Positions 1-3,210 of a DNA stretch of 64,000 nucleotides are shown here, in pieces. The stretch spans positions 930,001 through 994,000 of the forward strand of contig MCFH01000009.1 of NCBI GenBank assembly GCA_002104945.1, in the 5' to 3' direction. Within the stretch, counting starts at the first letter, position 1; the number at the start of each line of letters is the position of its first letter. Source of the stretch: Piromyces finnis finn. Its lineage: Eukaryota > Fungi > Neocallimastigomycota. The notes below the pieces were generated by a model. That model did no database searches and was not told the DNA's origin. It saw only the letters and a program-made list of their open reading frames with translations. Position numbers and translations under genes: made by a program.

Positions 1-3000
1 TTATTAGATTCTTTTAAGTTATTATTTATTTGAAGTTGTTGATTTCTTAATTGAATAAGTAAAGAGGCAACTGTCATTAATGATATACGTTCAAAAGGAT
101 CGTAATTCCATGTTTTCTCTAAAATGTCCCACATTTTATTTGAATATAAAATATTATTTTCTAGTGAAAAGTTGTTAACTTTAAGTTTTGAAGGATATTT
201 ATCATGGATAATCATATATTCCACTTGAACTTCATTTATAATATCATAAAAAGGAATCTTTTGAAATATAATTTCATAGAAAAGACGACCAACTGAAAAG
301 ATGTCAGAGAAAATACTAATTTTTCCAATAACATTACTATAATCATTATTTTGATCAAAACTTTTAAAATCATCTAGATCTTCATTATTACTGAAATGAT
401 TTTTAATATTTTGTAGCTTATACTCTGAAAAAAGCTCTGGTGCCTTCCAACGAATTGCATCTGTAACTTTACATGGTATTGTCAACGTACTATTACTATT
501 TTAAATATATAATTATCATATATTTATTAATCAAAGTATTTTTTTTTTTCTTTTTACAATTCTTTTTTGTCATATACAATTTAAATTTATTATCATTCTT
601 CCCATAATTATACCTGTTAATTTGATTGGTTTGAAAAACACTTAATCCAAAATCACATATTTTAGGTTTTCCATTTTCTGTGATTAAAATATTATCACTT
701 TTAATATCACCATGAATAATATTATTTTGATGAAGATGATATAACCCAGTAATTATTCCATGCATAATTTGTAATTTTTGTTCTGGAGAAATATTTTTCT
801 GACTAGTATATGTTTTTACTGTACCTCGACTACAATATTCCGATATAATAGATGGGTATTGACTAATATGGCATGCACCATAGAATTGTAAAATATTTGG
901 ATGGCTTTTAATCCTACTCCATATCTCTATTTCTCTTAAAAATAATTCTTTTTCATTAATATGTAAATTATTATTAATTCCATTGCTATCAATTATTGTT
1001 TCTTTATAACATTCATTTGTTTCGAGATTTAGCGTTTTCTTTGCAACTAATGCCCCATTATATATACACTTTTGTACATAGCAATAACTTCCAGATCTAA
1101 AGATTTATTTATCAAATATTTTATGATATTATTATAATTTTATTATATATATATATATATATTTATACACATTGCTATATAGTAATTTTTTAATCCATAT
1201 TATTTATTAATATTTTAATGTGTACCCAATGAAAGCATCTTTACTTTCTAATACATCAATATTAGTTTCATCAATAAACCATGAAGGAAGAGTTTTAGTT
1301 TCATTTGCTACTTTTGATTTTCTTTTCATATAACCCAATAGCTTTATGGCTAGATCATAAAGTTTAGGATTAGCTTGTGAATGATTTACCATATTCATAG
1401 TTTTTACAATATATTCATATTCATTTTTTTTAAATATATCTATGATAGCTGAATTTGATTGACCTACTTACAAAAAAAAAAATTTCAATTTAAAAAAATA
1501 TCATCAATAATTAAACTATATATATGATACAAAAATTAGTTTAAATTAAATACTATTTGAACTATTAATCTTGGATTTTTCTTCATCATTATCTGTCATA
1601 TAAGGAATATTCTTCTCCTTATTATTATTATTATTTTCAACTGTATATATTGCATATTTTTTTTTTAAAAAAATTATAATAAAGAAAATAAAAAATACAA
1701 CTTTCTGATTATTTATTAATGTATAACTATAGTAATAATTATAATAAGTTATATATATAAAATATATAAATAAAATATAATACTGACCTTGAATATTATT
1801 GCCTTCTACTAAATTAATTTTGCTTAATGATCGACTACTATTTTCCATTATAATTTTCTTTTTATTTTTCATAATAATTGGACTATCTAATAACGATTAA
1901 TTATATATATATAACATGAAAAGTATTTTTTTTATAAAAGTATAAAAAAATCATTAAAGATTTACTGAATTCATTTTTATTATTTATTTATATTTCATAT
2001 TTACTTTCTATTGTTTCAATACTTCCTAAATTTTGAGATCTAGATAAAGAAATTGAAGTATTATTATTTGATGGATTTGGTACTTTTACTAACATTTTTT
2101 TATATAACTTTTCATCATTTTCCAATATTTCCTTATAATAGTTATATTCTTCTGCTCTTTCTAATTCTCTTCTTTTTTTACGTTCTTTTTCATTTTTTTT
2201 TCTTAATTTTTCTAACTCTTTAATTAGTTCATACTTTTGTTTTTGCATTTCTCTAGTTTTCTTTTTTATCTCTCTTTCTTTTCTTTTTGCTTTATCTTCT
2301 GCACTTTCTTCCTTTGGTTGAGTTTGTGGAAGGGCCGGAACATCTTTATTAAGGTTAGTAGTACTAATATCTTTTTGACTCTTAACATAATCATGTAATA
2401 ATGAAAAGGTATCAATTTGAAATTGTTTCATTATAAAATCTAATTCCTCTTCCAACTTAATAAATAATGGATGAATTATTTATTATAATACAATTTAAAT
2501 CAATGAGGTTTAAAAAAATAATATTATATATATAAACATTTTATAATAATTTTAAAATAAATAAATTTTTTATTTTTCTATTTTTCTATTTTTTTTTTTT
2601 TTTTTATTATTATTTTATTTTTATTTTTATTTTATGTATTATTACCCCATCCATTTTTTCATCATTTACTGACAAATACCATAATCGTTCAACAAAGTTT
2701 TTTGATTTTATTTTCTTTACATGGGCCATAAATTTTCTAGTATATTTATAAAAATGAATAATAACAGGAGGTATAGAACTTTCCAATTCATTTTTATAAT
2801 TACTATATGGATTAATTCCAGAATCACTTTCTTTATATTTATCTTTTTCCTTTGAAGAATGATGATTCTCTTTTTCTTTTTCCACTAATAATGCTTGATT
2901 TTCCGAAAATTTATATATTGAATCCAATTGTAAAGCTAAATCATTTAAATATTTCGCATGATTTTTATATCGTATAAAACTTGCGTTTAATTCATTACAA

Positions 3001-3064
3001 TATGAAATAATCGAGGAAACATTACCAATAATATCTAGATAGTCTATTATTTATATAATGGTGG

Positions 3065-3095
<31 letters not shown>

Positions 3096-3210
3096 TATAG
3101 ATTTTTTTGTATATTACAATGGAATATTCACAAATGAATTTTATAAATATACTAATTATTCAATATATATATTATTTAATTATTTATTATTTTATGATAT
3201 TACCTCCCAT
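1..3210 (-). CDS. Multi-exon protein kinase (TKL-like, non-RD) with N-terminal MLKL-like four-helix-bundle domain and charged coiled-coil linker; 3' end runs off the window
   Basis: Manual splicing with GT-AG sites in consistent phase. ATG GGA G|gt at 3210 joins to give MGDYLDIIGNVSSIISYCNELNASFIRYKNHAKYLNDLALQLDSIYKF...FYKYTRKFMAHVKKIKSKNFVERLWYLSVNDEKMD..EEELDFIMKQFQI. Kinase motifs: IG|SGSYCYV (G-loop), VAKK, LFLREIEIW (alphaC), HPNILQFYG, HGDIKSDN, DFG, IRWKAPE, SDIFSVG, W..DPFER. ORF-track pieces 2610-2927, 1988-2455, 1546-1872, 1207-1398 and 496-765 are exons of this one gene. Confidence 0.85.

Follow-up and report, generated by a model that had tools for sequence, protein, structure and literature searches.

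We describe a multi-exon gene on the minus strand of a 64,000-nucleotide stretch of the Piromyces finnis genome (contig MCFH01000009.1, positions 930,001 to 994,000 of the forward strand; hereafter the window), an AT-rich region in which the gene starts at position 3210 and passes beyond the left edge. Its product is predicted to be a soluble, single-chain protein of roughly 1,100–1,200 residues, with a helical domain at its extreme N-terminus, a charged linker, a protein kinase and leucine-rich repeats (LRRs). Judging from the modelled fold of a paralogous domain, the helical domain is probably a divergent, lineage-specific member, invisible to Pfam, of the superfamily of MLKL_N, HeLo and RPW8 bundles, which are common membrane-attacking effectors in animal necroptosis, fungal heterokaryon incompatibility and the helper nucleotide-binding LRR receptors (NLRs) of plants. 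As an explanation of the whole, we favour on balance a single-chain bundle–kinase–LRR protein that would act as sensor, switch and effector. Because it combines an active-looking kinase with LRRs, the protein is, by its domain content, not an MLKL ortholog.

The domain comprises about 145 residues, encoded by exon 1, exon 2 and the first ~11 codons of exon 3 (Table 1). Searched by profile, a set of 1.84 billion representative proteins yielded 12 relatives, and across this space the family appears restricted to Neocallimastigomycota: all named sources belong to that phylum, the others being metagenomes or metatranscriptomes. A word-index search with residues 1–125 of one relative, P0013, a spliced metatranscriptome open reading frame (ORF), found only P0013 itself. 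Within P. finnis, neither exon 2 nor the family profile, searched across the 56.46 Mb assembly (232 contigs), matched any paralog, so that the paralog count suggested by the initial annotation gives a domain copy number of one in this genome.

The members separate into the clade of the window protein, which carries a charged insert of about 40 residues between helices 2 and 3, and compact paralogs that lack it. The two groups are clearly homologous by profile comparison (hhalign 99.9%, E 5.4e-31, 34% identity over 93 columns), and the insert is disordered in the model of the window domain. Its length and sequence vary between species, the longest version being that of N. lanati, with a poly-Glu run. 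Most members pair the domain with a kinase and LRRs; in P0014 from Neocallimastix californiae (L017:6001-6851) its partner is instead a ubiquitin-like domain (Pfam ubiquitin, 5.9e-14), and a single exon (L017:6474-6848) spans the junction. This fusion shows the bundle to be a mobile module that has more than one kind of partner.

For the compact paralog P0013, the domain is confidently modelled as an up-down four-helix bundle. AlphaFold2, run on residues 1–126 with a 14-row alignment that included the window sequence, gave a mean predicted local distance difference test (pLDDT) score of 81.3 and a predicted TM-score (pTM) of 0.73, with helices at residues 3–18, 22–47, 57–78 and 81–108, the last of them split into 81–90 and 92–108. 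Compared by VIA-align with 48,161 representative PDB chains, the model had mouse MLKL as its best match (4btf, Z 12.2, r.m.s.d. 2.0 Å over 95 residues, model residues 1–113 on chain residues 2–117), followed by the human MLKL N-terminal domain (6ux8, Z 12.1, 113 residues) and the CC-R domain of the plant NLR NRG1.1 (7l7v, Z 10.5); AtMLKL3 (6ka4, Z 9.2) stood at rank 11. On a second look, MLKL entries occupied ranks 1–4 and NRG1.1 ranks 5–6. Foldseek gave its best TM-score to NRG1.1 CC-R (7l7v_B, 0.59/0.66). An independent search by sequence features in the ESM Atlas, again with P0013 1–126, placed PF22215 MLKL_N first (0.94, with 193 of 256 features in common) and MCAfunc and RPW8 next, with a recognition value of 2618 and the ten best named matches all in one family or clan. 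The structure prediction and fold search proposed in the initial annotation have thus yielded, for the paralog, a four-helix bundle with MLKL as its best match.

Downstream of the bundle and linker, the Ser/Thr kinase keeps all catalytic motifs: the GSGSYCYV glycine loop, the VAKK β3 lysine, the αC glutamate (REIEIW), HGDIKSDN, DFG and APE. Because all of these are present, it is apparently an active kinase and not an MLKL-type pseudokinase. Its closest PDB kinases are a mixed group (CTR1, PLK4, TNIK, TAO and LIMK). Beyond the window, at contig coordinates of about 927,600–930,000, alignment of the L008 ORF by tblastn, L008 being a spliced transcript contig from a Neocallimastix relative, locates a further linker and then about ten plant-type 24-residue LRRs; the neighbouring 924-aa protein of Anaeromyces robustus likewise combines Pkinase with LRR. 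No signal peptide was found and no membrane span, the Kyte–Doolittle 19-residue average peaking at 1.37 for the exons in the window and at 1.25 for the L008 ORF; because there is no hydrophobic span, the protein is expected to be soluble. Between bundle and LRRs, Pfam gives kinase families only, and no NB-ARC or NACHT NTPase was found. The initial annotation had proposed the architecture of MLKL, an N-terminal domain, linker and kinase; the order of parts holds, and the picture is changed by the intact catalytic motifs and by an LRR tail that had not been noticed.

How far the bundle itself can be called MLKL-like has to be weighed against another reading, in which the domain, as a generic four-helix bundle or coiled coil, serves dimerisation, autoinhibition or scaffolding of the kinase, on the model of the leucine zippers of mixed-lineage kinases or the 4H bundle of Cbl; the likeness to MLKL would then be convergent packing, with no membrane-disrupting role. 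We regard this as a serious alternative, although a less probable one. Several results speak for it and weigh against membership of the superfamily. In sequence, exon 2 has no Pfam family at E ≤ 10, so that the profile search suggested by the initial annotation (MLKL_N, HeLo, RPW8 and MCAfunc models) came back empty at that threshold, and none of PF22215, PF14479, PF17111, PF05659 and PF19584 reached significance in exon 2 or nine other family proteins; the nearest approach was a weak collinear match of P0014 to Pfam MLKL_N (E 0.29, 11.1 bits against a cut-off of 27, residues 8–108 on profile positions 4–109 of 142). PDB sequence and profile searches with the domain and with a clean family alignment, A6, used after alignment A4 had been swamped by ubiquitin through the tail columns of P0014, gave the domain no relevant PDB match and no MLKL, HeLo or RPW8 chain. 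In the ESM Atlas, exon 2 had as named neighbours PF17111, SesA, MLKL_N and HeLo, all within the one superfamily, at 0.87–0.89, with a recognition value of 2032, below the threshold of 2300. In structure, exon 2 modelled with four sequences gave one long helix (residues 2–60; pLDDT 56, pTM 0.29) and was not used for the fold search, so that the evidence on the fold is that of a paralog 34% identical to the window domain, transferred in the hhalign register. All Foldseek E-values were at least 1, the match with the best E-value (2oku_B) being unrelated. Unrelated four-helix bundles, among them Cbl TKB domains and designed helical proteins, scored Z of about 10–10.6 against 12 for MLKL, a lead of ~1.5 Z, and for helical bundles a VIA-align Z under ~13 may reflect a common arrangement only. 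Further, a kinase that is catalytically intact by its motifs, unlike that of MLKL, can function without an executioner domain, and a long charged coiled coil after the N-terminal domain is typical of oligomerising kinases.

Against convergence stands the pattern of the structural matches. MLKL had been named in advance, and its ranking carries weight because the hypothesis was stated before the search and because MLKL, which has few PDB representatives, came out on top, with its known relatives NRG1.1 CC-R third and AtMLKL3 eleventh, all aligned N-terminus to N-terminus. The feature-based search arrived independently at MLKL_N, MCAfunc and RPW8, and a second P. finnis gene with the same layout, described below, matches Pfam MLKL_N directly. 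The resemblance to the MLKL N-terminal domain that the initial annotation read from the helices therefore stands for the paralog's modelled fold, with MLKL at ranks 1–2 and NRG1.1 at rank 3, and is unmatched by any profile hit of the window sequence.

Two further alternatives concern the gene rather than the fold. The helical domain could be a separate small protein merely encoded upstream of a kinase–LRR gene, as the public annotations would have it: models of the orthologs are split into 164 + 1154 aa in N. lanati and 319 + 924 aa in A. robustus, where 127 bp separate the two models, both on one strand, and the Piromyces sp. E2 model is a partial 255 aa. Transcript contig L008, from the Joint Genome Institute (JGI), carries bundle, kinase and LRRs, but has a frameshift and a TAA stop in the poly-Asn/Ser linker, between the bundle and a 1,157-aa ORF (L008:372-612 compared with L005:10634-11560). 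Because it falls in a poly-Asn tract and is absent from the N. lanati genome, this frameshift most likely arose when the low-complexity repeat collapsed in assembly; the first ~70 bases of the same contig also depart from the coding sequence expected there. Exon 3, by contrast, runs as one open frame from the last bundle helix into the 'downstream' coiled coil in each of four species, as read in genomic sequence of the window, L006, L009 and N. lanati (L005), the 164-aa model of N. lanati ends by reading into intron 2, and P0013 holds bundle, coiled coil and kinase in a single 636-aa frame. On the strength of the exon 3 frame and the joined frame of P0013, bundle, charged linker and kinase form one gene, read from genomic and transcript sequence of relatives; the exon 3 frame, L008 and P0013 thus speak for one transcript, as the initial annotation had supposed, and separate proteins are very improbable. 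Because the models of four anaerobic-fungus genomes split the gene, its architecture has been hidden from domain surveys.

The position of the bundle at the extreme N-terminus depends in turn on the start. The initial annotation had placed it in a 7-nt coding micro-exon, ATGGGAG, directly followed by the donor GTAATA; exon 2 begins at 3043, and the G of the micro-exon joins AC to give Asp across the junction, so that the protein starts MGDYLDIIGNVSS. All the sequence strings quoted in the initial annotation were located in the window. An upstream start exon is needed because the exon 2 frame is closed upstream of 3050 and offers no in-frame ATG before the exon. The string ATGGGNGGTA occurs once on both strands of the 64 kb, exactly at the micro-exon (expected, 0.05; matches in 5 of 100 shuffles). 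Metagenomic orthologs keep the exon at the same distance 5′ of the same exon, as ATGGGAG/GTAAT in L006 and ATGGGTG/GTATG in L009, the GGA/GGT change being synonymous (Gly third position). In the A. robustus ortholog P0015 the annotated start MGDCLDLLG arises from ATGG/GT...AG/GTGAT, and in family paralogs a start exon of 4–10 nt is followed by a phase-1 intron that interrupts the Asp codon: ATGAGTATTG/GT...AG/AT in N. californiae and ATGG/GT...AG/AT in Piromyces sp. E2. The spliced transcript L013, which encodes P0013, has a 168-nt leader and starts M-D-P immediately before helix 1. With helix 1 beginning three residues past the start codon, the domain lies at the extreme N-terminus.

The micro-exon could still be spurious, with the start in another upstream exon or at an internal Met and the bundle away from the very N-terminus. 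The N. lanati model does have a different first exon, of 12 residues and 1.6 kb upstream, the A. robustus intron is shifted by one codon, and the support for the start comes from genomic sequence and from sequences of relatives. Set against these points, the uniqueness of ATGGGAG in the window, its retention in two orthologs through a synonymous change, the MGD start annotated in A. robustus and the M-D-P start of L013 leave such an error highly unlikely, and we take the 7-nt start exon to be real as read from these comparisons, as first proposed. N-myristoylation of Gly2, considered separately on general knowledge, was judged unlikely, with Asp after the Gly and no Ser or Thr at position 6. 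Gly2 is not conserved either, relatives having MAD, MD and MSID starts.

A second gene with the same order of parts was found by scanning the P. finnis genome with PF22215. It lies at about 294,112–298,431 of contig C90 on the minus strand (L019:1113-5432:-) and is a single frame of 1,440 codons with an MLKL_N-like domain (E 0.0025, residues 5–130, full-length coverage of the profile, below the cut-off), a kinase (PK_Tyr_Ser-Thr, 1.6e-58) and a C-terminal LRR_6 region of ribonuclease-inhibitor type. By eye, its kinase keeps the VAIK lysine, HGD, the Asn and DFG, but its glycine loop is degenerate and APE is replaced by ANE. No sequence relation was detected between its N-terminal domain and those of the window family (hhalign probability 0.3%). 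The two genes share the order bundle–kinase–LRR and differ in kinase type, LRR type and the presence of a single large ORF; taken together, they give the three-part layout twice in one genome.

In the sensor–switch–effector reading, the LRRs would bind a ligand or partner, and the kinase, through autophosphorylation or a conformational change, would free the N-terminal bundle from autoinhibition. Once released, the bundle would oligomerise and engage membranes by way of helix 1, which is uncharged, and helix 3, which is strongly basic, leading to ion flux or cell death in parallel with MLKL and with the CC and CC-R domains of plant NLRs. A membrane-attacking or cell-death role is drawn from this analogy, and we hold it to be possible but doubtful. 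More speculative, and in our view improbable as it stands, is the wider proposal that anaerobic gut fungi may possess single-chain innate-immune or allorecognition receptors, arisen at least twice in one genome, in which an active kinase takes the place of the nucleotide-binding oligomerization domain (NOD) of NLRs and, switched by LRR sensing, releases an MLKL/RPW8-type pore-forming bundle. If true, this would put necroptosis-like executioner bundles, joined to sensors, into a fungal lineage that diverged early.

In Neocallimastigomycota, a chain of bundle, active kinase and LRRs would carry the superfamily into a deeply branching part of the fungi, and would provide a natural example in which an active kinase, and not a pseudokinase or an NTPase, sits between sensor and effector, and so makes the question of bundle release directly testable. 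A survey of early-diverging fungi placed MLKL-family homologs in Glomeromycotina only (PMC8778642). Apart from that survey, our full-text literature search returned no paper tying MLKL-type domains to Neocallimastigomycota, and none on LRR kinases in anaerobic fungi.

Comparison with known systems helps to place the protein. With MLKL_N (PF22215, cd21037; animal MLKL, plant AtMLKL3 and wheat Pm13) it shares the extreme N-terminal position of the bundle and, as modelled, its size and topology, and as in MLKL the bundle is followed by a helical connector and a kinase-fold domain. Animal and plant MLKLs are pseudokinases, whereas the fungal kinase motifs are intact; the fungal protein differs also in its C-terminal LRRs and in the ~40-residue helix 2–3 insert of the window clade. 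Where MLKL has a two-helix brace, the fungal connector reads from its sequence as a long charged coiled coil with a pre-kinase region of ~85 residues. The charged, putatively helical stretch of ~80 residues after the bundle, in exon 3, has 29 Lys/Arg and 20 Asp/Glu among 81 residues.

The RPW8-type CC-R domain of NRG1.1 (7l7v/7l7w, PF05659) is likewise an N-terminal four-helix bundle (Z 10.5–11.3) in a bundle–switch–LRR layout, but NRG1.1 has an NB-ARC NTPase as its central switch where the fungal protein has a protein kinase; the fungal domain, moreover, has no Pfam RPW8 match and belongs to a fungal lineage. The fungal HeLo, HELL, SesA and Goodbye domains (HET-S, HELLP and fungal NLRs; PF14479, PF17111, PF17107) are comparable as N-terminal helical bundles with varied C-terminal partners. 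Such HeLo-type families have been described from Dikarya, with amyloid motifs or NOD domains, and so have almost all fungal bundles of the MLKL, HeLo and RPW8 kind (PMC9815663, PMC12881547). Here, by difference from HeLo and HeLo-like domains, the lineage is that of the gut fungi, Neocallimastigomycota, the partner is an active-looking kinase and there is no Pfam match; the 50 best structural matches of the P0013 model included no HeLo structure. Plant-type LRR receptor kinases differ in having extracellular, N-terminal LRRs, where those of the fungal protein lie C-terminal to the kinase, and in the signal peptide and membrane span that the fungal protein lacks.

Exons 4–8 of the window gene join in consistent phases and are collinear with L008 (Table 1). 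The junction of exons 2 and 3 appears spliced in L008 (EKMDG/FEEELNF) and in P0015, and exon 3 opens at 2455 with LEEELDFIMKQFQI.

Table 1. Exons, introns and predicted helices of the bundle–kinase–LRR gene, in window positions.
Feature	Position	Strand	Basis or remark
Exon 1, 7-nt start exon ATGGGAG, coding for Met, Gly and base 1 of Asp	3204..3210	-	Unique in window, conserved in L006/L009
Intron 1, 160 nt, phase 1, GT...poly-T...AG	3044..3203	-	Long T tract, AG at 3045-3044
Exon 2, most of N-terminal helical domain (DYLDIIG...EKMDG)	2646..3043	-	Orthologs 68-83% identical; GTAATA donor follows
Helix 1 (predicted), YLDIIGNVSSIISYCN; uncharged, small and hydrophobic residues	2994..3041	-	P0013 helix 3-18, hhalign register
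Helix 2 (predicted), SFIRYKNHAKYLNDLALQLDSIYKF; most conserved block of the family	2907..2984	-	P0013 helix 22-47
Clade-specific charged low-complexity insert, helix 2-3 loop	2769..2906	-	Absent from compact paralogs; pLDDT <50 in exon 2 model
Helix 3 (predicted), PVIIHFYKYTRKFMAHVKKIKS; 6 Lys/Arg, no acidic residue	2703..2768	-	P0013 helix 57-78
Helix 4, first part (predicted), FVERLWYLSVNDEKMDG	2646..2696	-	P0013 helices 81-90, 92-108
Intron 2, phase 0, GTAATA...AG, inside helix 4	2456..2645	-	Spliced junction in L008 and P0015
Exon 3, helix 4 end (LEEELDFIMKQ, 2423-2455), linker, charged coiled-coil/single-helix stretch (about 2081-2323)	2005..2455	-	One open frame
Helix 4, remainder (predicted), LEEELDFIMKQ	2423..2455	-	After intron 2
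Exon 4, linker, phase 1 to phase 1	1788..1886	-	Splice sites read; collinear with L008 transcript ORF
Exon 5, linker (...KNIPYMTDNDEE...)	1554..1640	-	Collinear with L008
Exon 6, conserved pre-kinase region, ends in first Gly of glycine loop	1226..1463	-	No Pfam family
Exon 7, kinase N-lobe through DFG (GSGSYCYV, VAKK, HGDIKSDN, DFG)	614..1096	-	Pkinase 1.4e-30
Exon 8, kinase C-lobe (APE onward), gene runs off left edge	1..495	-	Pfam and tblastn of L008 ORF

To the left of the window, at about 927,600–929,300 of the contig (L004:2600-4300), short exons mostly encode a single C-terminal LRR each; these exons served to confirm that the gene continues. Upstream of the orthologous gene, N. lanati and A. 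robustus both have a cyclin gene.

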